A stretch of 64,000 nucleotides of DNA, taken from positions 29,948,640 through 30,012,639 of the forward strand of contig OZ037766.1 in NCBI GenBank assembly GCA_964035545.1, read 5' to 3'. The stretch is from Bugula neritina (Eukaryota; Animalia; Bryozoa). The notes below the pieces were generated by a model, which did not search any database, had not been told where the DNA came from, and saw nothing but the letters and a program-made list of their open reading frames with translations. The stretch's first letter is position 1. Each line of letters begins with the position of its first letter. A program made the position numbers and the translations under genes. This document shows positions 831 through 63,715 of this stretch, piece after piece.

Positions 831-2920
831 TATATTATATATATGTTCAACCATTCAACCACTGAGCATTATAACCTATGAAATCTCAAAATGGTAATAA
901 AGTCTGCTTTGTCCTTTCTTCGACCATAAAAATTAATCTTTTTAACCTAAAAGGTGAACCCTAAGCTTTGCATATACATTTTATATTTATTCAAACATAT
1001 TATACAACGTGCCCATAAATTTTTTGTCAAAATTTCATCTGCTCCTACAAAATAAAAATCGGAGATGCATTTTATGTGGTGGTGACACATTTAGAACTTT
1101 GTTTACCAGATTAATTTGTCTGCAATTTTATTGGCTAATATGTTCTCACAAGGCTAATACTAATTGGCTTGCACAGCAGAGTTTTATTGATGATGAAGTT
1201 TTCCTTAAATTAAGGTGATGCAATCAAATACCAAATAGCTAAACGATCATGATAATGACATGGTATACATAATATTAATGGCCTGCGAGATATACTTAAT
1301 ATATGCAAATCGTTCATTACACTAAAAACCATTAGAACAGGATTCTACATGGTTTAATGTCAAAAAGTCATGCCATTAATTATCTTGTCACTGAGTAATT
1401 GTTGACAATAAAACACAAGCTATCTTTTAGCCAATAAAATAGCTGGTTTATATGATATATTGAGTAACAGGTTGCTCAACTATAGTGATGATGCATGACA
1501 AAAATGAATTTTTTCGTGATGACATCAGTAATATTATGTATATTATAAATTACTAGTGAAAAGCTATAATTTATACTTTCATCATTTAGTCTCAGTGCAG
1601 CTGCTCTAATTATTGGTATTAATAAAATTATATTGTAAGCACTAAGAGATGACGCATATATATATGCTTCAAATCAGAAAATAAAATTCTAATTTTCTTC
1701 TCCCATATATAGTACTTAAGGTATTTAGAAATTTTTTTTGAACGGCATCTTTAAAACAATTCATTTTTTCAGTCTAACTTTTAATAGCCATATCAGCTAC
1801 TGTGTAATCAATTAGGTGGTAGAATGCGTAGAATCAACTCTCTTGCATTGAAAATAAATATTATATTATAGACCTTCAATTAATGCTTTCTTTTAACTTT
1901 AACTACAATTAAATTTGTATACATATTCTCCTTATAATACTAAATAATTCAAGTGATCAATAATACCAATGAAGTATTTTGATCTTATATTTAATTTTAC
2001 CAACATTTCATAAAAGCAGCTATTCATTCAACCAGGTACCAACTCAGCTTTTTGCAAGCCACAGGCCACTACTGAGTAGTATTTGAGTTAAAAATCAAAC
2101 AAATTTATATTGCTAAGCGAATCTTACCACGAATCAACATAAATAACTGCATATCTATGTGCATGATGAAGATATAGCACCTTTGTGTATTATAATATTA
2201 TCTGTACTTCATACAGTTGAATGAAAAAAAGATTTTCCCAATAAAACACAGATTATTAGAACTTTAGTTTCAATGCTTAGGTTGAAATATAAAATAATTA
2301 CAAAATAGAAGATGTGACACAGATGACTACTTTATATTTTTACCACTTGAAGAGTAAGTTATTAACTAGGCAAATTACTCATAATCTGGATCATTAAATA
2401 TGGAACTGATCACTGGGTAAGGACCTATAAATCTGACAATTAATCTCTATAATACGATATGAACGCAGAAGTAGCATACACTATTTTTCAACAGCCTGCT
2501 ATAACTGTAACATATTATCATTACAGGATGTTCCAATTTTACAATTTTACTTTCTTTATTAGTGTGGTATTAAAACTTAAATAATGCTGATATAGTGTAA
2601 AAATGCAAATATTTCACCAAAAGCTTGACGGGGTGATTTTAATATGTTGACTACAAGTTGCTTACTAAAGTATACTTTCAACTTTTACCTTTCACCACTA
2701 TGTCCCCATAAGTCAAGTAGCTGATACAACTTGCTTGCTGTTTATCTATAATTGATTAGTTTGATGGGCTGAAGAAAAGACAATCTGCATATTGTCATTA
2801 ATTGTAGCTATCTTACAAATCTTATTTTTATTTTAAAGTCATCCTGCTATGACTCACTATAAACACTTATGTTGCAAATTATATTTAGCAATAATTTGGT
2901 AATGAAGCTCCTAGAACATC

Positions 2921-3005
2921 AACCAATCAGATAGCTGAGTTACATGGTAATCGCTTAAAGATTTGGTATATAAGGAGAAGGTTGAGATTTAATAAACAAA
3001 TCAGT
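2921..3005 (+). promoter_or_regulatory. Core promoter of paralog A (CCAAT box, TATA box, Inr-like TCAGT); repeated in every unit
   Basis: AACCAATCAG at 2921-2930, TATATAA at 2967-2973 and TCAGT at 3001-3005, ahead of the ATG at 3049. The same three motifs occur in paralog B. Confidence 0.75.
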
Positions 3006-3048
3006 ACTGAATATCAGTTACACTACAAGAGAAACTAGAACTATTACT

Positions 3049-4142
3049 ATGAGGAAGAGCATAGCCTGTGGTCTACTATTGGCAGCAGTTTTTGCTGTCT
3101 CTGTTGATCTGAGTGATGCAACTTGTGGACGTAAGTAAAATATGGACTTATCAAATCCTAATTTCAGAGTTGAAAATATTAATTAAATGCTTATCATCAA
3201 TTACTATATTATAGTATATACAAAGTATTAGCTAATATTTATGCATATAAGCTAACTTTAATGAGTTTCTAAGCGTTTGAGCAATAAATTGTCGTATTAA
3301 AACAAATGATAGTTTTTAAGTCCAATAAAAACATTTGTTTGAGTTTGAAAAGTTAATGAGACAGTAGAACTGTATTAAAAACTAAACATTTGTAATCTAC
3401 AAAAAATTTCTTTCATATTTAATAAAAAAATTATCCCTATCCTAAATGACATGATATTTAATGTTTAAAAAGTTTAGTTTAATCCCGAGTATTTTTTCAG
3501 ATGGAGTAAACTGCCCCAGTGGGTATCTCCACAATCCACATTCTAGCACCTGCTACAAAATTGTTACATTGTCAAAGAACTGGGATAATGCCAAAGCCTA
3601 CTGTGAAGGAAATGGAGACAGACTTGCTGTGTTTGACAGTACTGACTCTATTTCTTGGGCTAAACACATGAGAAAAACTCACTCAGGTAAATTACTATAA
3701 TATAACTTTCAAAATATATTATGATAAAACGTTTGCTTTTTTGAGTGCACATTTATATTGAAATATAGCTCCCCTATCATAGTTCGAGCAAAAATGGTTT
3801 ATATTATTGCAATGAAATAAAAGTAATACTCCGATATTTTTGTTTAAGAAAAAAAGATCATTGGCTAGAGCTAATATAGAAAATATTTTTACCCTATTTT
3901 ATGCAGCATGGAAAGGGCATATCAACAAATACATTTGGATTGGCGGAAGAAACTATCATGGTGTCTGGCAATGGGATGGGAAACTCAAGAAAGACATAGT
4001 TGTAGAGGACTGGTACCCCCAACGCCCCAACAATTTAGGAGGTCCTCAAGACTGTCTCGGTCTATTTGCTGATAGTAATGACCTCAAGTGGGATGATGGA
4101 ACCTGCACTTCTGCGGAATATTTTATGTGTGAAAAATATTAA
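3049..4142 (+). CDS. Secreted single-domain C-type lectin-like protein, paralog A, unit 1 (3 exons, 167 aa)
   Basis: Exons 3049-3130, 3501-3686, 3907-4142 with GT-AG phase-1 introns; 504 nt in total. Protein MRKSIACGLLLAAVFAVSVDLSDA-TCGHGVNCPSGY...CYK...WDNAKAYC...WIGG...WYPQRPNN...DCL...WDDGTC...FMCEKY: a signal-peptide-like N-terminus, the WIG motif and the long-form CTLD cysteine pattern. Confidence 0.95.
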
Positions 4143-7142: not shown

Positions 7143-8228
7143 TTAATATTTTTCACACATAAAATAATGCGCAGCAGTGCAGGTTCCATCATCCCATTGA
7201 AGATTCTGATTGTTAGCAAATAGACCGAGACAGTCTTGAGGGCCTCCCGCATTGTTGGGACGTTGAGGGTACCAATCCTCTACAACTATGTCTTTCTCGA
7301 GTTTCCCATCCCATTGCCAGACCCCTTGATAGTTTCTTCCGCCAATCCAGATGTATTTGTTGATATGCCCTTTCCATGCTGCATATAAGATAAGATAAAA
7401 TATAGATGTATTTCACTAGCAGCTTTGTGCAATCCTAAATGCAAGACTATAATATTATTGTTATTTTGCTGATGTTATTTGCCATAATCTAGACTAAAGC
7501 TCGTTTCAAGAAGCATAATATATATAACTATTCCAATATGATTGTGCACTCAAATCCACAATATATCTTTAAAAATTATGAGAATTCACCTGAGTGAGTT
7601 TTCCTCATATGTTTAGCCCAGGATATAGAGTCAGTACTATCAAACACAGCCAGTCTGTCTCCATTTCCTTCACAGTAGGCTTTGGCATCATTCCATTTCT
7701 TTGACAACGTAACAATTTTGTAGCAGGTGCTAGAATGTGGATTGTAGATATAGCCACTGGGGCAGTTTACTCCATCTGAAAAAAATATATATTTAGAATG
7801 AGCCAAAAATTTTAAACTCAAAATATCAAGTCATGTAAGATACAAGTATTATCTTTTATGTGTGACAACATTTTGTGTCAATTATAACAAGCGTTTGATG
7901 ATTTTTGCAATAGTCAAAAACCATTAATAATTAATACAACTATTGCTTTTTTAATTTTCCACATTTCTGCTAATCCGTTCATTAAAATTGTAAAAAAATA
8001 ATTAGTTCTAATACGTTTATTTATTTCAAGAGCAATGCAAGAACTTATTAAATTTGGTAAATTCTCAACAGTTTAGTTTTACATCTATTAACATTTTATT
8101 TGCAATTCTAAACTTGAACCCTATATAAGAACTTTGCTTTACTTACGTCCACATGTTGCATCACTCAGATCAAAACAGACAGCAATAATTGCTGCCAATA
8201 GTAGACCACAGGCTATGCTCTTCTTCAT
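7143..8228 (-). CDS. Secreted single-domain C-type lectin-like protein, paralog B, unit 1 (3 exons, 167 aa)
   Basis: Exons 8228-8147, 7775-7590, 7378-7143 have the same sizes (82/186/236 nt) and phases as paralog A. Protein MKKSIACGLLLAAIIAVCFDLSDA-TCGHGVNCPSGYIYN...WIGGRNYQG...WYPQRPNNAGGPQDCLGLFANNQNLQWDDGTCTAAHYFMCEKY; 20 aa differences from A. Confidence 0.95.
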
Positions 8229-8273
8229 AGTAATAGTTTTAGTTTCTCTTGTAGTGTATAACTGATTTTCAGT

Positions 8274-8359
8274 ACTGATGTGCTTATCACATCTCAACAC
8301 TCTCCCTTATATACCAAATCTCAATGTGATTACCAAGTAACTTAGCTACCTGATTGGTT
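8274..8359 (-). promoter_or_regulatory. Core promoter of paralog B (CCAAT box, TATA box, Inr-like TCAGT); repeated in every unit
   Basis: Minus strand: AACCAATCAG at 8359-8350, TATATAA at 8313-8307 and TCAGT at 8278-8274, ahead of the ATG at 8228. Confidence 0.75.
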
Positions 8360-8835
8360 GTTTTTTGTCCAGTAAACCGTAAATATATTGCAAAACCATC
8401 ACTAAACATTATTTTTTATATATGACTAAATAAATTATGTCTCTTATACGTATGTAGTTATGACAATTTTCTAGGTCTTGTTTTTTTAAATTAGCATCAG
8501 AAATTATCTTTCAAAAATTGTACATTGCATGAAAGCCCAACAAAAAATTAATTATAATATTTCATTGCATTATATTCTAGTAAACAACATCTGTTAGATT
8601 TATAATTGAGTGTAAAAGACATTGTTAAAATTATTAGCTTAAAATTTCTGCTAATACAAAAGCTAGACTAGACACTGCTTCTTGCTACTTGAAGAATCTC
8701 TGACAGACTCCATTAATGCATTGCTAAGATGTTGATATAGATTTAAGCTGTCATGTCTATAAACTGTTTATTTGAAGGCTTTATGCTCAATAAAAAGTTT
8801 TAATGTAGACTTTGTGTAGAAATATATATATATAT

Positions 8836-9829
8836 TATCAAGAAAAAGAGCAATTTAATTAGATATTATTTTATTGTGCTACTAATTACTATTAGTTTCA
8901 TTCCTCTGCAGCACTCTTCAGGCACAATATTGAATTCAAATTTTACATTAAGAAAATCAACATGCTAAACGTACAATGTAAAACATAACACAAACATAGC
9001 AGTGGCTTTGGTGTTATATAGGTTTGTAAGTGTTTTTAAATATATAAAAAACATAATGTAAAAACACAATTGATAGTAGATGAAGTTGTTGTTGGGTGAC
9101 TATGCTCTGTGGGTATTTGGATATTATTTAATTGCTACAGTACATATAATATAAATACAGAGTCTCTATAGGTTTTATGGTTGCACAGTAAGAGTTTTTT
9201 TGAGTGTCGGCAGGTTGATAAGAGTTCGTTTCGCTTGTTTAGAGTACACATGGTAGGTTTGTATAAAATAAAAAAACATTCCCACAGGCATAAATTACAC
9301 CTTTTGGTAATTGTGTTGTATGGTTTTGCTTTCCTCAACATTTTCCAACTTATATTGCGTTTAATGTTTTTGTTAGTTAGTTGCCAAGTGTATTTGCTAA
9401 GTTCTGTTTGATTTGCTTTTTCTTTGTTTTTAAATGATGATTTGTGGTTTGCGTATCTTAGTTTGAACGGTCCTTCACTCAGGCCAATGTATGTTGCAGG
9501 CTCGTTTTCGGTAGTTTCTACAGTTGCTTGGTATATTACTCTGCTCTCCTGACAGTTTTCTTCCAGTGTACAACTTTCTTTTTCTCTGCAGTTGCAGTTT
9601 TTTCTGGGGGTTTTGTTTTGTTGCTTCTGTTTCTCTGTTTTTCTGATATTCTGTTTTTGTGGGCGTCTAAATTATGGTCTGTTTTATGTTTGGCATGCAG
9701 CTGTAGCTAACTTTTATATTGTTTTTGTTGATTATTTTATAGAGTGGATGTTCAGATTTTAAAGAAGTTTTTTTGCAATTTTTGTGGTTACATATTGGCT
9801 GTGTGTTGGATTGTACCAATCTACTTTTT
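8836..9829 (-). mobile_element. 5'-truncated PLE (~1 kb): GIY-YIG domain, 3' UTR and terminal hammerhead, with short (TA)n on both sides
   Basis: Same coding remnant (endonuclease frame 9671-9135). The 3' region runs to the hammerhead at 8872-8929 and ends at the TA tract at 8822-8835; the 5' break abuts the TA tract at ~9830-9843. Boundaries are approximate. Confidence 0.85.
8872..8929 (-). ncRNA. Type I hammerhead ribozyme
   Basis: Minus strand reads UAUUGUGC-CUGAAGA-GUGC-UGCAGAG-GAAU-GAAA-CUAAU-AGUA-AUUAG-UA-GCACAAUA: perfect 8-bp stem I, CUGANGA core, imperfect stem II, GAAA, perfect stem III with a tetraloop and a GUA cleavage triplet (predicted cut between 8880 and 8879). Confidence 0.85.
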
Positions 9830-12047
9830 TATATTATATATATGTTCAACCATTCAACCACTGAGCATTATAACCTATGAAATCTCAAAATGGTAATAAA
9901 GTCTGCTTTGTCCTTTCTTCGACCATAAAAATTAATCTTTTTAACCTAAAAGGTGAACCCTAAGCTTTGCATATACATTTTATATTTATTCAAACATATT
10001 ATACAACGTGCCCATAAATTTTTTGTCAAAATTTCATCTGCTCCTACAAAATAAAAATCGGAGATGCATTTTATGTGGTGGTGACACATTTAGAACTTTG
10101 TTTACCAGATTAATTTGTCTGCAATTTTATTGGCTAATATGTTCTCACAAGGCTAATACTAATTGGCTTGCACAGCAGAGTTTTATTGATGATGAAGTTT
10201 TCCTTAAATTAAGGTGATGCAATCAAATACCAAATAGCTAAACGATCATGATAATGACATGGTATACATAATATTAATGGCCTGCGAGATATACTTAATA
10301 TATGCAAATCGTTCATTACACTAAAAACCATTAGAACAGGATTCTACATGGTTTAATGTCAAAAAGTCATGCCATTAATTATCTTGTCACTGAGTAATTG
10401 TTGACAATAAAACACAAGCTATCTTTTAGCCAATAAAATAGCTGGTTTATATGATATATTGAGTAACAGGTTGCTCAACTATAGTGATGATGCATGACAA
10501 AAATGAATTTTTTCGTGATGACATCAGTAATATTATGTATATTATAAATTACTAGTGAAAAGCTATAATTTATACTTTCATCATTTAGTCTCAGTGCAGC
10601 TGCTCTAATTATTGGTATTAATAAAATTATATTGTAAGCACTAAGAGATGACGCATATATATATGCTTCAAATCAGAAAATAAAATTCTAATTTTCTTCT
10701 CCCATATATAGTACTTAAGGTATTTAGAAATTTTTTTTGAACGGCATCTTTAAAACAATTCATTTTTTCAGTCTAACTTTTAATAGCCATATCAGCTACT
10801 GTGTAATCAATTAGGTGGTAGAATGCGTAGAATCAACTCTCTTGCATTGAAAATAAATATTATATTATAGACCTTCAATTAATGCTTTCTTTTAACTTTA
10901 ACTACAATTAAATTTGTATACATATTCTCCTTATAATACTAAATAATTCAAGTGATCAATAATACCAATGAAGTATTTTGATCTTATATTTAATTTTACC
11001 AACATTTCATAAAAGCAGCTATTCATTCAACCAGGTACCAACTCAGCTTTTTGCAAGCCACAGGCCACTACTGAGTAGTATTTGAGTTAAAAATCAAACA
11101 AATTTATATTGCTAAGCGAATCTTACCACGAATCAACATAAATAACTGCATATCTATGTGCATGATGAAGATATAGCACCTTTGTGTATTATAATATTAT
11201 CTGTACTTCATACAGTTGAATGAAAAAAAGATTTTCCCAATAAAACACAGATTATTAGAACTTTAGTTTCAATGCTTAGGTTGAAATATAAAATAATTAC
11301 AAAATAGAAGATGTGACACAGATGACTACTTTATATTTTTACCACTTGAAGAGTAAGTTATTAACTAGGCAAATTACTCATAATCTGGATCATTAAATAT
11401 GGAACTGATCACTGGGTAAGGACCTATAAATCTGACAATTAATCTCTATAATACGATATGAACGCAGAAGTAGCATACACTATTTTTCAACAGCCTGCTA
11501 TAACTGTAACATATTATCATTACAGGATGTTCCAATTTTACAATTTTACTTTCTTTATTAGTGTGGTATTAAAACTTAAATAATGCTGATATAGTGTAAA
11601 AATGCAAATATTTCACCAAAAGCTTGACGGGGTGATTTTAATATGTTGACTACAAGTTGCTTACTAAAGTATACTTTCAACTTTTACCTTTCACCACTAT
11701 GTCCCCATAAGTCAAGTAGCTGATACAACTTGCTTGCTGTTTATCTATAATTGATTAGTTTGATGGGCTGAAGAAAAGACAATCTGCATATTGTCATTAA
11801 TTGTAGCTATCTTACAAATCTTATTTTTATTTTAAAGTCATCCTGCTATGACTCACTATAAACACTTATGTTGCAAATTATATTTAGCAATAATTTGGTA
11901 ATGAAGCTCCTAGAACATCAACCAATCAGATAGCTGAGTTACATGGTAATCGCTTAAAGATTTGGTATATAAGGAGAAGGTTGAGATTTAATAAACAAAT
12001 CAGTACTGAATATCAGTTACACTACAAGAGAAACTAGAACTATTACT

Positions 12048-17222: not shown

Positions 17223-17829
17223 AGTAATAGTTTTAGTTTCTCTTGTAGTGTATAACTGATTTTCAGTACTGATGTGCTTATCACATCTCAACACTCTCCC
17301 TTATATACCAAATCTCAATGTGATTACCAAGTAACTTAGCTACCTGATTGGTTGTTTTTTGTCCAGTAAACCGTAAATATATTGCAAAACCATCACTAAA
17401 CATTATTTTTTATATATGACTAAATAAATTATGTCTCTTATACGTATGTAGTTATGACAATTTTCTAGGTCTTGTTTTTTTAAATTAGCATCAGAAATTA
17501 TCTTTCAAAAATTGTACATTGCATGAAAGCCCAACAAAAAATTAATTATAATATTTCATTGCATTATATTCTAGTAAACAACATCTGTTAGATTTATAAT
17601 TGAGTGTAAAAGACATTGTTAAAATTATTAGCTTAAAATTTCTGCTAATACAAAAGCTAGACTAGACACTGCTTCTTGCTACTTGAAGAATCTCTGACAG
17701 ACTCCATTAATGCATTGCTAAGATGTTGATATAGATTTAAGCTGTCATGTCTATAAACTGTTTATTTGAAGGCTTTATGCTCAATAAAAAGTTTTAATGT
17801 AGACTTTGTGTAGAAATATATATATATAT

Positions 17830-18823
17830 TATCAAGAAAAAGAGCAATTTAATTAGATATTATTTTATTGTGCTACTAATTACTATTAGTTTCATTCCTC
17901 TGCAGCACTCTTCAGGCACAATATTGAATTCAAATTTTACATTAAGAAAATCAACATGCTAAACGTACAATGTAAAACATAACACAAACATAGCAGTGGC
18001 TTTGGTGTTATATAGGTTTGTAAGTGTTTTTAAATATATAAAAAACATAATGTAAAAACACAATTGATAGTAGATGAAGTTGTTGTTGGGTGACTATGCT
18101 CTGTGGGTATTTGGATATTATTTAATTGCTACAGTACATATAATATAAATACAGAGTCTCTATAGGTTTTATGGTTGCACAGTAAGAGTTTTTTTGAGTG
18201 TCGGCAGGTTGATAAGAGTTCGTTTCGCTTGTTTAGAGTACACATGGTAGGTTTGTATAAAATAAAAAAACATTCCCACAGGCATAAATTACACCTTTTG
18301 GTAATTGTGTTGTATGGTTTTGCTTTCCTCAACATTTTCCAACTTATATTGCGTTTAATGTTTTTGTTAGTTAGTTGCCAAGTGTATTTGCTAAGTTCTG
18401 TTTGATTTGCTTTTTCTTTGTTTTTAAATGATGATTTGTGGTTTGCGTATCTTAGTTTGAACGGTCCTTCACTCAGGCCAATGTATGTTGCAGGCTCGTT
18501 TTCGGTAGTTTCTACAGTTGCTTGGTATATTACTCTGCTCTCCTGACAGTTTTCTTCCAGTGTACAACTTTCTTTTTCTCTGCAGTTGCAGTTTTTTCTG
18601 GGGGTTTTGTTTTGTTGCTTCTGTTTCTCTGTTTTTCTGATATTCTGTTTTTGTGGGCGTCTAAATTATGGTCTGTTTTATGTTTGGCATGCAGCTGTAG
18701 CTAACTTTTATATTGTTTTTGTTGATTATTTTATAGAGTGGATGTTCAGATTTTAAAGAAGTTTTTTTGCAATTTTTGTGGTTACATATTGGCTGTGTGT
18801 TGGATTGTACCAATCTACTTTTT
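17830..18823 (-). mobile_element. 5'-truncated PLE copy
   Basis: Copy of 8836-9829. Confidence 0.85.
17866..17923 (-). ncRNA. Type I hammerhead ribozyme, copy
   Basis: Identical to 8872-8929. Confidence 0.85.
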
Positions 18824-26147: not shown

Positions 26148-26754
26148 AGTAATAGTTTTAGTTTCTCTTGTAGTGTATAACTGATTTTCAGTACTGATGT
26201 GCTTATCACATCTCAACACTCTCCCTTATATACCAAATCTCAATGTGATTACCAAGTAACTTAGCTACCTGATTGGTTGTTTTTTGTCCAGTAAACCGTA
26301 AATATATTGCAAAACCATCACTAAACATTATTTTTTATATATGACTAAATAAATTATGTCTCTTATACGTATGTAGTTATGACAATTTTCTAGGTCTTGT
26401 TTTTTTAAATTAGCATCAGAAATTATCTTTCAAAAATTGTACATTGCATGAAAGCCCAACAAAAAATTAATTATAATATTTCATTGCATTATATTCTAGT
26501 AAACAACATCTGTTAGATTTATAATTGAGTGTAAAAGACATTGTTAAAATTATTAGCTTAAAATTTCTGCTAATACAAAAGCTAGACTAGACACTGCTTC
26601 TTGCTACTTGAAGAATCTCTGACAGACTCCATTAATGCATTGCTAAGATGTTGATATAGATTTAAGCTGTCATGTCTATAAACTGTTTATTTGAAGGCTT
26701 TATGCTCAATAAAAAGTTTTAATGTAGACTTTGTGTAGAAATATATATATATAT

Positions 26755-27748
26755 TATCAAGAAAAAGAGCAATTTAATTAGATATTATTTTATTGTGCTA
26801 CTAATTACTATTAGTTTCATTCCTCTGCAGCACTCTTCAGGCACAATATTGAATTCAAATTTTACATTAAGAAAATCAACATGCTAAACGTACAATGTAA
26901 AACATAACACAAACATAGCAGTGGCTTTGGTGTTATATAGGTTTGTAAGTGTTTTTAAATATATAAAAAACATAATGTAAAAACACAATTGATAGTAGAT
27001 GAAGTTGTTGTTGGGTGACTATGCTCTGTGGGTATTTGGATATTATTTAATTGCTACAGTACATATAATATAAATACAGAGTCTCTATAGGTTTTATGGT
27101 TGCACAGTAAGAGTTTTTTTGAGTGTCGGCAGGTTGATAAGAGTTCGTTTCGCTTGTTTAGAGTACACATGGTAGGTTTGTATAAAATAAAAAAACATTC
27201 CCACAGGCATAAATTACACCTTTTGGTAATTGTGTTGTATGGTTTTGCTTTCCTCAACATTTTCCAACTTATATTGCGTTTAATGTTTTTGTTAGTTAGT
27301 TGCCAAGTGTATTTGCTAAGTTCTGTTTGATTTGCTTTTTCTTTGTTTTTAAATGATGATTTGTGGTTTGCGTATCTTAGTTTGAACGGTCCTTCACTCA
27401 GGCCAATGTATGTTGCAGGCTCGTTTTCGGTAGTTTCTACAGTTGCTTGGTATATTACTCTGCTCTCCTGACAGTTTTCTTCCAGTGTACAACTTTCTTT
27501 TTCTCTGCAGTTGCAGTTTTTTCTGGGGGTTTTGTTTTGTTGCTTCTGTTTCTCTGTTTTTCTGATATTCTGTTTTTGTGGGCGTCTAAATTATGGTCTG
27601 TTTTATGTTTGGCATGCAGCTGTAGCTAACTTTTATATTGTTTTTGTTGATTATTTTATAGAGTGGATGTTCAGATTTTAAAGAAGTTTTTTTGCAATTT
27701 TTGTGGTTACATATTGGCTGTGTGTTGGATTGTACCAATCTACTTTTT
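26755..27748 (-). mobile_element. 5'-truncated PLE copy
   Basis: Copy of 8836-9829. Confidence 0.85.
26791..26848 (-). ncRNA. Type I hammerhead ribozyme, copy
   Basis: Identical to 8872-8929. Confidence 0.85.
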
Positions 27749-35139: not shown

Positions 35140-35746
35140 AGTAATAGTTTTAGTTTCTCTTGTAGTGTATAACTGATTTTCAGTACTGATGTGCTTATCA
35201 CATCTCAACACTCTCCCTTATATACCAAATCTCAATGTGATTACCAAGTAACTTAGCTACCTGATTGGTTGTTTTTTGTCCAGTAAACCGTAAATATATT
35301 GCAAAACCATCACTAAACATTATTTTTTATATATGACTAAATAAATTATGTCTCTTATACGTATGTAGTTATGACAATTTTCTAGGTCTTGTTTTTTTAA
35401 ATTAGCATCAGAAATTATCTTTCAAAAATTGTACATTGCATGAAAGCCCAACAAAAAATTAATTATAATATTTCATTGCATTATATTCTAGTAAACAACA
35501 TCTGTTAGATTTATAATTGAGTGTAAAAGACATTGTTAAAATTATTAGCTTAAAATTTCTGCTAATACAAAAGCTAGACTAGACACTGCTTCTTGCTACT
35601 TGAAGAATCTCTGACAGACTCCATTAATGCATTGCTAAGATGTTGATATAGATTTAAGCTGTCATGTCTATAAACTGTTTATTTGAAGGCTTTATGCTCA
35701 ATAAAAAGTTTTAATGTAGACTTTGTGTAGAAATATATATATATAT

Positions 35747-36740
35747 TATCAAGAAAAAGAGCAATTTAATTAGATATTATTTTATTGTGCTACTAATTAC
35801 TATTAGTTTCATTCCTCTGCAGCACTCTTCAGGCACAATATTGAATTCAAATTTTACATTAAGAAAATCAACATGCTAAACGTACAATGTAAAACATAAC
35901 ACAAACATAGCAGTGGCTTTGGTGTTATATAGGTTTGTAAGTGTTTTTAAATATATAAAAAACATAATGTAAAAACACAATTGATAGTAGATGAAGTTGT
36001 TGTTGGGTGACTATGCTCTGTGGGTATTTGGATATTATTTAATTGCTACAGTACATATAATATAAATACAGAGTCTCTATAGGTTTTATGGTTGCACAGT
36101 AAGAGTTTTTTTGAGTGTCGGCAGGTTGATAAGAGTTCGTTTCGCTTGTTTAGAGTACACATGGTAGGTTTGTATAAAATAAAAAAACATTCCCACAGGC
36201 ATAAATTACACCTTTTGGTAATTGTGTTGTATGGTTTTGCTTTCCTCAACATTTTCCAACTTATATTGCGTTTAATGTTTTTGTTAGTTAGTTGCCAAGT
36301 GTATTTGCTAAGTTCTGTTTGATTTGCTTTTTCTTTGTTTTTAAATGATGATTTGTGGTTTGCGTATCTTAGTTTGAACGGTCCTTCACTCAGGCCAATG
36401 TATGTTGCAGGCTCGTTTTCGGTAGTTTCTACAGTTGCTTGGTATATTACTCTGCTCTCCTGACAGTTTTCTTCCAGTGTACAACTTTCTTTTTCTCTGC
36501 AGTTGCAGTTTTTTCTGGGGGTTTTGTTTTGTTGCTTCTGTTTCTCTGTTTTTCTGATATTCTGTTTTTGTGGGCGTCTAAATTATGGTCTGTTTTATGT
36601 TTGGCATGCAGCTGTAGCTAACTTTTATATTGTTTTTGTTGATTATTTTATAGAGTGGATGTTCAGATTTTAAAGAAGTTTTTTTGCAATTTTTGTGGTT
36701 ACATATTGGCTGTGTGTTGGATTGTACCAATCTACTTTTT
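35747..36740 (-). mobile_element. 5'-truncated PLE copy
   Basis: Copy of 8836-9829. Confidence 0.85.
35783..35840 (-). ncRNA. Type I hammerhead ribozyme, copy
   Basis: Identical to 8872-8929. Confidence 0.85.
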
Positions 36741-37290: not shown

Positions 37291-37422
37291 TATCTTGTCA
37301 CTGAGTAATTGTTGACAATAAAACACAAGCTATCTTTTAGCCAATAAAATAGCTGGTATCTTGTCACTGAGTAATTGTTGACAATAAAACACAAGCTATC
37401 TTTTAGCCAATAAAATAGCTGG
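37291..37422. repeat. 66-bp perfect tandem duplication unique to unit 5
   Basis: TATCTTGTCACTGAG...AAAATAGCTGG occurs at 37291-37356 and again at 37357-37422. It is single-copy in the other units (e.g. 1381-1446). Confidence 0.95.
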
Positions 37423-39024
37423 TTTATATGATATATTGAGTAACAGGTTGCTCAACTATAGTGATGATGCATGACAAAAATGAATTTTTTCGTGATGACA
37501 TCAGTAATATTATGTATATTATAAATTACTAGTGAAAAGCTATAATTTATACTTTCATCATTTAGTCTCAGTGCAGCTGCTCTAATTATTGGTATTAATA
37601 AAATTATATTGTAAGCACTAAGAGATGACGCATATATATATGCTTCAAATCAGAAAATAAAATTCTAATTTTCTTCTCCCATATATAGTACTTAAGGTAT
37701 TTAGAAATTTTTTTTGAACGGCATCTTTAAAACAATTCATTTTTTCAGTCTAACTTTTAATAGCCATATCAGCTACTGTGTAATCAATTAGGTGGTAGAA
37801 TGCGTAGAATCAACTCTCTTGCATTGAAAATAAATATTATATTATAGACCTTCAATTAATGCTTTCTTTTAACTTTAACTACAATTAAATTTGTATACAT
37901 ATTCTCCTTATAATACTAAATAATTCAAGTGATCAATAATACCAATGAAGTATTTTGATCTTATATTTAATTTTACCAACATTTCATAAAAGCAGCTATT
38001 CATTCAACCAGGTACCAACTCAGCTTTTTGCAAGCCACAGGCCACTACTGAGTAGTATTTGAGTTAAAAATCAAACAAATTTATATTGCTAAGCGAATCT
38101 TACCACGAATCAACATAAATAACTGCATATCTATGTGCATGATGAAGATATAGCACCTTTGTGTATTATAATATTATCTGTACTTCATACAGTTGAATGA
38201 AAAAAAGATTTTCCCAATAAAACACAGATTATTAGAACTTTAGTTTCAATGCTTAGGTTGAAATATAAAATAATTACAAAATAGAAGATGTGACACAGAT
38301 GACTACTTTATATTTTTACCACTTGAAGAGTAAGTTATTAACTAGGCAAATTACTCATAATCTGGATCATTAAATATGGAACTGATCACTGGGTAAGGAC
38401 CTATAAATCTGACAATTAATCTCTATAATACGATATGAACGCAGAAGTAGCATACACTATTTTTCAACAGCCTGCTATAACTGTAACATATTATCATTAC
38501 AGGATGTTCCAATTTTACAATTTTACTTTCTTTATTAGTGTGGTATTAAAACTTAAATAATGCTGATATAGTGTAAAAATGCAAATATTTCACCAAAAGC
38601 TTGACGGGGTGATTTTAATATGTTGACTACAAGTTGCTTACTAAAGTATACTTTCAACTTTTACCTTTCACCACTATGTCCCCATAAGTCAAGTAGCTGA
38701 TACAACTTGCTTGCTGTTTATCTATAATTGATTAGTTTGATGGGCTGAAGAAAAGACAATCTGCATATTGTCATTAATTGTAGCTATCTTACAAATCTTA
38801 TTTTTATTTTAAAGTCATCCTGCTATGACTCACTATAAACACTTATGTTGCAAATTATATTTAGCAATAATTTGGTAATGAAGCTCCTAGAACATCAACC
38901 AATCAGATAGCTGAGTTACATGGTAATCGCTTAAAGATTTGGTATATAAGGAGAAGGTTGAGATTTAATAAACAAATCAGTACTGAATATCAGTTACACT
39001 ACAAGAGAAACTAGAACTATTACT

Positions 39025-44134: not shown

Positions 44135-44741
44135 AGTAATAGTTTTAGTTTCTCTTGTAGTGTATAACTGATTTTCAGTACTGATGTGCTTATCACATCT
44201 CAACACTCTCCCTTATATACCAAATCTCAATGTGATTACCAAGTAACTTAGCTACCTGATTGGTTGTTTTTTGTCCAGTAAACCGTAAATATATTGCAAA
44301 ACCATCACTAAACATTATTTTTTATATATGACTAAATAAATTATGTCTCTTATACGTATGTAGTTATGACAATTTTCTAGGTCTTGTTTTTTTAAATTAG
44401 CATCAGAAATTATCTTTCAAAAATTGTACATTGCATGAAAGCCCAACAAAAAATTAATTATAATATTTCATTGCATTATATTCTAGTAAACAACATCTGT
44501 TAGATTTATAATTGAGTGTAAAAGACATTGTTAAAATTATTAGCTTAAAATTTCTGCTAATACAAAAGCTAGACTAGACACTGCTTCTTGCTACTTGAAG
44601 AATCTCTGACAGACTCCATTAATGCATTGCTAAGATGTTGATATAGATTTAAGCTGTCATGTCTATAAACTGTTTATTTGAAGGCTTTATGCTCAATAAA
44701 AAGTTTTAATGTAGACTTTGTGTAGAAATATATATATATAT

Positions 44742-45735
44742 TATCAAGAAAAAGAGCAATTTAATTAGATATTATTTTATTGTGCTACTAATTACTATTA
44801 GTTTCATTCCTCTGCAGCACTCTTCAGGCACAATATTGAATTCAAATTTTACATTAAGAAAATCAACATGCTAAACGTACAATGTAAAACATAACACAAA
44901 CATAGCAGTGGCTTTGGTGTTATATAGGTTTGTAAGTGTTTTTAAATATATAAAAAACATAATGTAAAAACACAATTGATAGTAGATGAAGTTGTTGTTG
45001 GGTGACTATGCTCTGTGGGTATTTGGATATTATTTAATTGCTACAGTACATATAATATAAATACAGAGTCTCTATAGGTTTTATGGTTGCACAGTAAGAG
45101 TTTTTTTGAGTGTCGGCAGGTTGATAAGAGTTCGTTTCGCTTGTTTAGAGTACACATGGTAGGTTTGTATAAAATAAAAAAACATTCCCACAGGCATAAA
45201 TTACACCTTTTGGTAATTGTGTTGTATGGTTTTGCTTTCCTCAACATTTTCCAACTTATATTGCGTTTAATGTTTTTGTTAGTTAGTTGCCAAGTGTATT
45301 TGCTAAGTTCTGTTTGATTTGCTTTTTCTTTGTTTTTAAATGATGATTTGTGGTTTGCGTATCTTAGTTTGAACGGTCCTTCACTCAGGCCAATGTATGT
45401 TGCAGGCTCGTTTTCGGTAGTTTCTACAGTTGCTTGGTATATTACTCTGCTCTCCTGACAGTTTTCTTCCAGTGTACAACTTTCTTTTTCTCTGCAGTTG
45501 CAGTTTTTTCTGGGGGTTTTGTTTTGTTGCTTCTGTTTCTCTGTTTTTCTGATATTCTGTTTTTGTGGGCGTCTAAATTATGGTCTGTTTTATGTTTGGC
45601 ATGCAGCTGTAGCTAACTTTTATATTGTTTTTGTTGATTATTTTATAGAGTGGATGTTCAGATTTTAAAGAAGTTTTTTTGCAATTTTTGTGGTTACATA
45701 TTGGCTGTGTGTTGGATTGTACCAATCTACTTTTT
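44742..45735 (-). mobile_element. 5'-truncated PLE copy
   Basis: Copy of 8836-9829. Confidence 0.85.
44778..44835 (-). ncRNA. Type I hammerhead ribozyme, copy
   Basis: Identical to 8872-8929. Confidence 0.85.
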
Positions 45736-53129: not shown

Positions 53130-53736
53130 AGTAATAGTTTTAGTTTCTCTTGTAGTGTATAACTGATTTTCAGTACTGATGTGCTTATCACATCTCAACA
53201 CTCTCCCTTATATACCAAATCTCAATGTGATTACCAAGTAACTTAGCTACCTGATTGGTTGTTTTTTGTCCAGTAAACCGTAAATATATTGCAAAACCAT
53301 CACTAAACATTATTTTTTATATATGACTAAATAAATTATGTCTCTTATACGTATGTAGTTATGACAATTTTCTAGGTCTTGTTTTTTTAAATTAGCATCA
53401 GAAATTATCTTTCAAAAATTGTACATTGCATGAAAGCCCAACAAAAAATTAATTATAATATTTCATTGCATTATATTCTAGTAAACAACATCTGTTAGAT
53501 TTATAATTGAGTGTAAAAGACATTGTTAAAATTATTAGCTTAAAATTTCTGCTAATACAAAAGCTAGACTAGACACTGCTTCTTGCTACTTGAAGAATCT
53601 CTGACAGACTCCATTAATGCATTGCTAAGATGTTGATATAGATTTAAGCTGTCATGTCTATAAACTGTTTATTTGAAGGCTTTATGCTCAATAAAAAGTT
53701 TTAATGTAGACTTTGTGTAGAAATATATATATATAT

Positions 53737-54730
53737 TATCAAGAAAAAGAGCAATTTAATTAGATATTATTTTATTGTGCTACTAATTACTATTAGTTTC
53801 ATTCCTCTGCAGCACTCTTCAGGCACAATATTGAATTCAAATTTTACATTAAGAAAATCAACATGCTAAACGTACAATGTAAAACATAACACAAACATAG
53901 CAGTGGCTTTGGTGTTATATAGGTTTGTAAGTGTTTTTAAATATATAAAAAACATAATGTAAAAACACAATTGATAGTAGATGAAGTTGTTGTTGGGTGA
54001 CTATGCTCTGTGGGTATTTGGATATTATTTAATTGCTACAGTACATATAATATAAATACAGAGTCTCTATAGGTTTTATGGTTGCACAGTAAGAGTTTTT
54101 TTGAGTGTCGGCAGGTTGATAAGAGTTCGTTTCGCTTGTTTAGAGTACACATGGTAGGTTTGTATAAAATAAAAAAACATTCCCACAGGCATAAATTACA
54201 CCTTTTGGTAATTGTGTTGTATGGTTTTGCTTTCCTCAACATTTTCCAACTTATATTGCGTTTAATGTTTTTGTTAGTTAGTTGCCAAGTGTATTTGCTA
54301 AGTTCTGTTTGATTTGCTTTTTCTTTGTTTTTAAATGATGATTTGTGGTTTGCGTATCTTAGTTTGAACGGTCCTTCACTCAGGCCAATGTATGTTGCAG
54401 GCTCGTTTTCGGTAGTTTCTACAGTTGCTTGGTATATTACTCTGCTCTCCTGACAGTTTTCTTCCAGTGTACAACTTTCTTTTTCTCTGCAGTTGCAGTT
54501 TTTTCTGGGGGTTTTGTTTTGTTGCTTCTGTTTCTCTGTTTTTCTGATATTCTGTTTTTGTGGGCGTCTAAATTATGGTCTGTTTTATGTTTGGCATGCA
54601 GCTGTAGCTAACTTTTATATTGTTTTTGTTGATTATTTTATAGAGTGGATGTTCAGATTTTAAAGAAGTTTTTTTGCAATTTTTGTGGTTACATATTGGC
54701 TGTGTGTTGGATTGTACCAATCTACTTTTT
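53737..54730 (-). mobile_element. 5'-truncated PLE copy
   Basis: Copy of 8836-9829. Confidence 0.85.
53773..53830 (-). ncRNA. Type I hammerhead ribozyme, copy
   Basis: Identical to 8872-8929. Confidence 0.85.
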
Positions 54731-62114: not shown

Positions 62115-62721
62115 AGTAATAGTTTTAGTTTCTCTTGTAGTGTATAACTGATTTTCAGTACTGATGTGCTTATCACATCTCAACACTCTCCCTTATATAC
62201 CAAATCTCAATGTGATTACCAAGTAACTTAGCTACCTGATTGGTTGTTTTTTGTCCAGTAAACCGTAAATATATTGCAAAACCATCACTAAACATTATTT
62301 TTTATATATGACTAAATAAATTATGTCTCTTATACGTATGTAGTTATGACAATTTTCTAGGTCTTGTTTTTTTAAATTAGCATCAGAAATTATCTTTCAA
62401 AAATTGTACATTGCATGAAAGCCCAACAAAAAATTAATTATAATATTTCATTGCATTATATTCTAGTAAACAACATCTGTTAGATTTATAATTGAGTGTA
62501 AAAGACATTGTTAAAATTATTAGCTTAAAATTTCTGCTAATACAAAAGCTAGACTAGACACTGCTTCTTGCTACTTGAAGAATCTCTGACAGACTCCATT
62601 AATGCATTGCTAAGATGTTGATATAGATTTAAGCTGTCATGTCTATAAACTGTTTATTTGAAGGCTTTATGCTCAATAAAAAGTTTTAATGTAGACTTTG
62701 TGTAGAAATATATATATATAT

Positions 62722-63715
62722 TATCAAGAAAAAGAGCAATTTAATTAGATATTATTTTATTGTGCTACTAATTACTATTAGTTTCATTCCTCTGCAGCAC
62801 TCTTCAGGCACAATATTGAATTCAAATTTTACATTAAGAAAATCAACATGCTAAACGTACAATGTAAAACATAACACAAACATAGCAGTGGCTTTGGTGT
62901 TATATAGGTTTGTAAGTGTTTTTAAATATATAAAAAACATAATGTAAAAACACAATTGATAGTAGATGAAGTTGTTGTTGGGTGACTATGCTCTGTGGGT
63001 ATTTGGATATTATTTAATTGCTACAGTACATATAATATAAATACAGAGTCTCTATAGGTTTTATGGTTGCACAGTAAGAGTTTTTTTGAGTGTCGGCAGG
63101 TTGATAAGAGTTCGTTTCGCTTGTTTAGAGTACACATGGTAGGTTTGTATAAAATAAAAAAACATTCCCACAGGCATAAATTACACCTTTTGGTAATTGT
63201 GTTGTATGGTTTTGCTTTCCTCAACATTTTCCAACTTATATTGCGTTTAATGTTTTTGTTAGTTAGTTGCCAAGTGTATTTGCTAAGTTCTGTTTGATTT
63301 GCTTTTTCTTTGTTTTTAAATGATGATTTGTGGTTTGCGTATCTTAGTTTGAACGGTCCTTCACTCAGGCCAATGTATGTTGCAGGCTCGTTTTCGGTAG
63401 TTTCTACAGTTGCTTGGTATATTACTCTGCTCTCCTGACAGTTTTCTTCCAGTGTACAACTTTCTTTTTCTCTGCAGTTGCAGTTTTTTCTGGGGGTTTT
63501 GTTTTGTTGCTTCTGTTTCTCTGTTTTTCTGATATTCTGTTTTTGTGGGCGTCTAAATTATGGTCTGTTTTATGTTTGGCATGCAGCTGTAGCTAACTTT
63601 TATATTGTTTTTGTTGATTATTTTATAGAGTGGATGTTCAGATTTTAAAGAAGTTTTTTTGCAATTTTTGTGGTTACATATTGGCTGTGTGTTGGATTGT
63701 ACCAATCTACTTTTT
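62722..63715 (-). mobile_element. 5'-truncated PLE copy
   Basis: Copy of 8836-9829. Confidence 0.85.
62758..62815 (-). ncRNA. Type I hammerhead ribozyme, copy
   Basis: Identical to 8872-8929. Confidence 0.85.

Follow-up and report, generated by a model that had tools for sequence, protein, structure and literature searches.

The hammerhead motif in the lectin array

Why should a segment of DNA that carries two lectin genes also carry, once in each of its tandem copies, the letters of a self-cleaving ribozyme, and does this ribozyme act on the transcripts of the gene that follows it? The question is raised by a window of 64,000 nucleotides (the whole stretch of Bugula neritina DNA that was analysed), taken from an AT-rich genome of 216 Mb with ~30% GC. 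In this window, a type I hammerhead-type motif of 58 nt, with a complete core, a defective stem II, and an AGUA loop, occupies positions 8872..8929 of the minus strand. An earlier, sequence-only reading reported that it recurs identically, and all seven of the copies that it placed in the window (7/7) are exact, against a chance expectation of 0. The other six, each on the minus strand, lie at 17866..17923 in the next unit and then at 26791..26848, 35783..35840, 44778..44835, 53773..53830, and 62758..62815.

The complete core, 8-bp stem I, and perfect stem III claimed for the minus strand can be read directly from the letters. The 5' strand of stem I is UAUUGUGC and its 3' strand is GCACAAUA (minus-strand reading); they form 8 of 8 base pairs with no mismatch, and the stem is open, which gives the type I topology. 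The core stretches are CUGAAGA after stem I and GAA after stem II, and every core letter is kept: C3 U4 G5 A6 N7 G8 A9, G12 A13 A14, A15.1-U16.1, and an A as H17. Stem III (ACUAAU, loop AGUA, AUUAGU) consists of 6 perfect bp, and both stem I and stem III are present in the minimum-free-energy fold. The base at the cleavage site is A, and the cut predicted from this parse falls at 8880/8879, the same position that the earlier reading had named. Stem II, which reads GUGCU, loop GCAGA, GGAAU, is made up of a G.U pair, a U-A pair, a G.A mismatch, a C-G pair, and a U.G pair; the window motif fails to show a stable stem II closed by G10.1-C11.1.

Throughout the genome the 58-mer is found ten times, every time within a single lectin array on contig C2 (~29.948-30.031 Mb), which is composed of ten tandem units of ~9 kb each. 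A unit contains two paralogous C-type lectin genes, both spliced, that lie convergently on opposite strands: one lectin A gene (about 3139-4142, plus strand) and one lectin B gene (about 8228-7140, minus strand). The lectin B promoter has a CCAAT box at 8357-8353 and a TATA box, TATATAAG, at 8313-8306; the ATG is at 8228, and the signal-peptide exon ends at a GTAAGT donor at 8146. The CCAAT box is located 515 nt downstream of the hammerhead motif on the same strand, in good agreement with the ~510 bp given before.

The units themselves are nearly the same. Among the six that are complete within the window, substitutions affect 0-7 sites per ~9 kb (99.92-100% identity), and the remaining differences between units consist of (TA)n or microsatellite length and a few indels of 66-70 bp, such as the 66-bp duplication at 37291-37423. 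With identity this high over entire 9-kb units, the constancy of the motif across them is uninformative on selection; an arbitrary 58-nt piece of the unit would recur just as perfectly.

The motif lies in the tail of a truncated Penelope-like element

The DNA around the motif reveals where it comes from. Positions 8831..9828 (minus strand) are a 5'-truncated fragment, ~1 kb in length, of a Penelope-like element (PLE) of the Hydra clade, as judged by clade markers. Tandem full-length copies of this element, with a unit of 2602 bp and a single ORF of 707 aa, are present at another locus, L031. The fragment (9828-8831, minus strand) aligns with L031 6620-7630 over 1040 positions with 85% identity. 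The same fragment is present in the further units at 17825-18822, 26750-27747, 35742-36739, 44737-45734, 53732-54729, and 62717-63714, and in part at 1-829. It contains the last 222 of the 707 codons (the final 667 nt of the ORF) together with the entire 3' tail.

The coding part is in decay. Homology by tblastn extends over 9135..9828 (minus strand), where a remnant of the CxCX5C linker and the GIY-YIG endonuclease matches residues 486-707 of the 707-aa ORF with 73% identity. CNCREKESC, CNLC, and CRH are retained; the stop codon of the family is lost, and the homology is spread over two reading frames, indicating that the remnant has suffered at least two frameshifts. The hammerhead motif sits in the 3' non-coding tail of the fragment, the pseudo-LTR region of the element, ~200 nt past the remnant of the endonuclease frame. 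The sequence-only reading had suggested that a type I hammerhead of this kind stems from a PLE, and this proves correct: the motif is in the tail of a PLE fragment, and full-length relatives carry the same ribozyme.

A short (TA)n tract at 8822..8836 adjoins the 3' end of the fragment, and a TA/A-rich remnant at about 9829-9850 adjoins its 5' end; (TA)n is the usual insertion target of Hydra-clade PLEs (PMC8557442). The promoter and first exon of lectin B (8147..8357, minus strand) are neighbours of the fragment and lie outside it. In a genome search, the flanks of the fragment, on both sides, were present only inside the 10 array units, and no empty insertion site was found.

With one co-oriented hammerhead motif in every tandem unit, the array has features of the animal non-LTR retrozymes and of the satellite hammerheads of newt and Schistosoma (PMC7229834), which are also type I, tandem, and in one orientation. 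The sequence-only reading pointed to this likeness. An array working in such a way would use its tandem hammerheads to reduce a multimeric transcript to RNAs of one unit each, possibly circular, and short hammerhead repeats do exist in this genome, as in locus L027, where two canonical motifs are found 271 nt apart. However, the known systems consist of short, non-coding ribozyme units whose RNA is cut and circularised, whereas the repeat here is a ~9-kb, gene-bearing duplication. It includes two spliced C-type lectin genes, one on each strand, and carries the motif as a bystander, embedded in a decayed PLE coding fragment. Furthermore, the array is the only one of its kind in the genome, and its unit has no dispersed copies. 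The likeness thus breaks down at the nature of the repeat, and a retrozyme or satellite type of array is extremely unlikely.

The full-length element and its intact ribozymes

The 707-aa ORF of the full-length copies contains the motifs YRDDG and VIY...YIG...R..H. Craig et al. 2021 (PMC8557442) give as markers of Hydra-clade PLEs the RWK and DKT motifs, the CxCX5C linker, and CxxC and CxH around endonuclease E/N; all of these, including DKT instead of DKG and the CxxC and CxH that flank the endonuclease, are found in this ORF. The family also resembles the Hydra clade of PLEs with a C-terminal endonuclease (PMC8557442) in being <3 kb with one ORF, in its (TA)n sites, and in having a hammerhead of the canonical type. 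We assign it to the Hydra clade by these markers. The window differs from a Hydra-clade element in that it holds a dead 1-kb 3' fragment by itself.

Sequence searches of Pfam and PDB with the 707-aa ORF gave no meaningful match, and the identity of the family rests on the motifs, a protein atlas, and a large protein search. Neighbours in the protein atlas belong to clusters with RVT_1, GIY-YIG, HTH_animal, and DUF8422. The large protein search returned 2403 relatives of ~700 aa, mostly on contigs of ~2.5 kb, some of them with Pfam matches to GIY-YIG or RVT_1; the best named PLE relatives come from a bivalve and a bryozoan and are 52-53% identical. A second Hydra-type PLE family is also present in this genome, with an ORF of 600 aa at L031 63-1865 (minus strand).

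A hammerhead in a PLE is an already known kind of element. Those described by Cervera and de la Pena 2014 (PMC4209133) are type I and occupy the non-coding repeat that separates PLE ORFs in tandem. The present family is alike in this respect: in the tandem copies, the hammerhead is placed between successive ORFs, with 257 nt separating it from the preceding stop codon and 222 nt from the ATG that follows. As in that work, copies are abundant and dispersed, and many are head-to-head stubs. A genome search with the 151-nt motif region yielded at least 200 candidate dispersed relatives, on all large contigs, with 80-89% identity, and both tandem and head-to-head arrangements of family copies occur. 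Intact family hammerheads often stand head-to-head, 40-120 nt apart (e.g. C1:3098870/3098917 and C3:14404540/14404587); such pairs are tiny inverted 3'-end stubs, which are typical for PLE insertion.

Intact ribozymes were defined by a pattern of CUGANGA, GUGC, six free positions, GGCAU, GAAA, and CUANUAG, which is found at a minimum of 128 sites in the genome, compared with 0 for the reversed control. Their stem II is GUGCC/GGCAU, a G.U pair followed by four Watson-Crick pairs. Their helix III, ACUA-N-UAGU, has palindromic 4-nt arms with one base between them; a hairpin is not possible in this helix, but pairing between two RNA copies is. A short, palindromic helix III has also been described for animal PLE hammerheads, implying action as a dimer: cutting is thought to require two paired copies of the ribozyme (PMC4209133). 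The role proposed in the literature for a hammerhead between tandem ORFs of live elements is to cut multimeric transcripts; this is a hypothesis, and the in vitro activity is low (PMC4209133). The family departs from the published PLE hammerheads (PMC4209133) in two features, since its stem II is closed by G10.1.U11.1 rather than by the highly conserved G10.1-C11.1 and A9 is not followed by an extra unpaired base. When two intact 51-nt copies were cofolded, the prediction was an uninformative one, an alternative duplex and not a hammerhead dimer.

A canonical AAUAAA hexamer at 8875-8870 (minus strand) shares letters with the 3' strand of stem I in the window motif and is kept in family copies (CAAUAAAA). 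It may be the polyadenylation signal of the PLE itself.

The homology to this family also bears on whether hammerhead letters arose at the array by chance in AT-rich DNA. A chance origin might seem to agree with the fold z-score of the window motif, only -1.34, and with the Rfam searches, in which no family was matched at the gathering score over the whole window and nothing was matched even at E <= 10 in the 400 nt around the motif. The Rfam/Infernal check, which the sequence-only reading had proposed, thus gave no match, but an intact copy of the family is missed equally; the silence of Rfam is therefore not decisive for this hammerhead variant. The published work on PLE hammerheads likewise needed special descriptors (PMC4209133). 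Since the window motif is homologous, position for position, to a PLE-family ribozyme with at least 128 genome copies, chance origin is refuted, and the probability left to it is negligible.

Changes private to the array copies

Compared with the intact ribozymes, the window copy has acquired changes in three places. At N7, G is replaced by A, which is harmless. In stem-loop II there are three changes, among them C11.3 to A, which causes the G.A mismatch. Finally, helix III contains a 7-nt insertion (approximate position 8889..8895, minus strand) relative to all other genomic copies. The insertion resembles an imperfect tandem duplication and turns helix III, which is short and palindromic in the family, into a stable stem III hairpin. 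In the genome as a whole, the GGAAU variant of stem II and the extended helix III are each confined to the 10 array units. The broken stem II and the private insertion with its 6-bp helix III hairpin also set the window copy apart from the published PLE hammerheads (PMC4209133).

The sequence-only reading had described stem II as possibly a weakened relic of GUGC/GCAC. The idea of weakening is upheld, as the relatives pair better; the guessed ancestor is not, as they read GUGCC/GGCAU. Predicted pair probabilities in stem II are 0.94-1.0 in an intact copy versus <=0.002 in the window copy, and the hammerhead conformation accounts for ~0.1% of the predicted ensemble of the latter. Nearest-neighbour folding takes no account of tertiary contacts in the hammerhead core, and hammerheads with a very short stem II can keep some activity. 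A descriptor requiring 3 consecutive stem II pairs missed the window copy and matched it once it was relaxed to 2 pairs; the same descriptor detects all intact copies at the loci that were retrieved, together with two other hammerhead families. Catalysis by the array copy has most likely been lost or is very weak.

Could a ribozyme altered in this way nevertheless have been put to use? The insertion in helix III might have turned it into a monomeric self-cleaver that, in each unit, acts on minus-strand transcripts ahead of lectin B by trimming or insulating them. Such a ribozyme would have an intact core with perfect stems I and III, its helix III hairpin is found at the lectin array and nowhere else, and it is co-oriented with lectin B, ~515 nt upstream of the CCAAT box. 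The hairpin also resembles an artificially lengthened helix III, with which cleavage by single PLE hammerheads became detectable in vitro (PMC4209133). By analogy with that experiment, residual monomeric cleavage by the window copy is possible. On the other side, the private change in stem II is disruptive, and the stem is predicted to be unpaired. The published PLE hammerheads are poor cleavers even with a lengthened helix III (PMC4209133), and the conservation between units, as noted above, carries no information when whole units are 99.9-100% identical. The homology between the upstream regions of lectin A and lectin B is limited to 2920-3139 versus 8360-8138; it stops at 8360, short of the PLE fragment, which leaves the motif beyond the recognisable promoter. 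Lastly, the closest upstream minus-strand gene is the lectin B gene of the next unit, several kb away. Taken together, an exapted, active ribozyme at this site is improbable. The more specific proposal, that the 7-nt insertion made a monomeric ribozyme with a stable helix III that cleaves despite its weak stem II and was co-opted against minus-strand transcripts upstream of lectin B, is very improbable; if true, it would be a natural counterpart of the helix III lengthening engineered in vitro.

The sequence-only reading had further proposed that cutting at the motif separates upstream transcription from lectin B or releases unit-length RNAs. This role finds no support here, as duplication explains the spacing and stem II is predicted to be unformed. 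The cutting of read-through RNA at the array motif is unlikely, and read-through RNA, if any, could equally end by ordinary polyadenylation at the AAUAAA.

A probable passive passenger of segmental duplication

With high probability, the motif is the damaged hammerhead of a dead PLE that was copied passively along with the lectin segment; its catalysis is probably lost or very weak, and it most likely plays no part in lectin B expression. We infer the following order of events. A single 5'-truncated PLE copy of ~1 kb would have inserted into a TA-rich tract that lies ~470 bp ahead of the lectin B promoter; it was possibly defective already at that time. Frameshifts and ribozyme changes would then have built up in the inserted copy. 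The 9-kb segment with the two lectin genes, PLE fragment included, would later have been amplified into the tandem array of 10 units. With this history, there is one ribozyme per 9-kb unit because the unit that was duplicated already held one dead PLE fragment.

The significance of the locus is mainly one of annotation. When DNA that already holds a dead retrotransposon fragment undergoes segmental duplication, each gene unit can passively come to carry what looks like a tidy ribozyme. Since young, near-identical repeats can be passive duplicates, their identity is no evidence of function. Specialists in ribozymes may find two features of interest: the fixed G.U at 10.1/11.1 in the family and the natural insertion that forms a hairpin in helix III.

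Other hammerheads in the genome

Two more hammerhead families were encountered. The hammerhead of the second PLE family, that with the 600-aa ORF, is located at about 1990 of locus L034 (minus strand; contig C3 near 12.2930 Mb), ~80 nt past the stop codon. Its stem II is CGUAG/CUACG, its stem I is also different, and the palindrome CAAUAUUG makes up helix III. In both PLE families, a U immediately precedes G12 and the closing pair is not Watson-Crick, being U.U in the second family and G.U in the first.

The third family is fully canonical: A9 is followed by an extra G, stem II is GGGA/UCCC, helix III contains CAGCUG, and the cleavage site is GUC. It is represented on the minus strand by L027 205 and 476 and by L015 1248; the two copies in L027 adjoin (TA)n.
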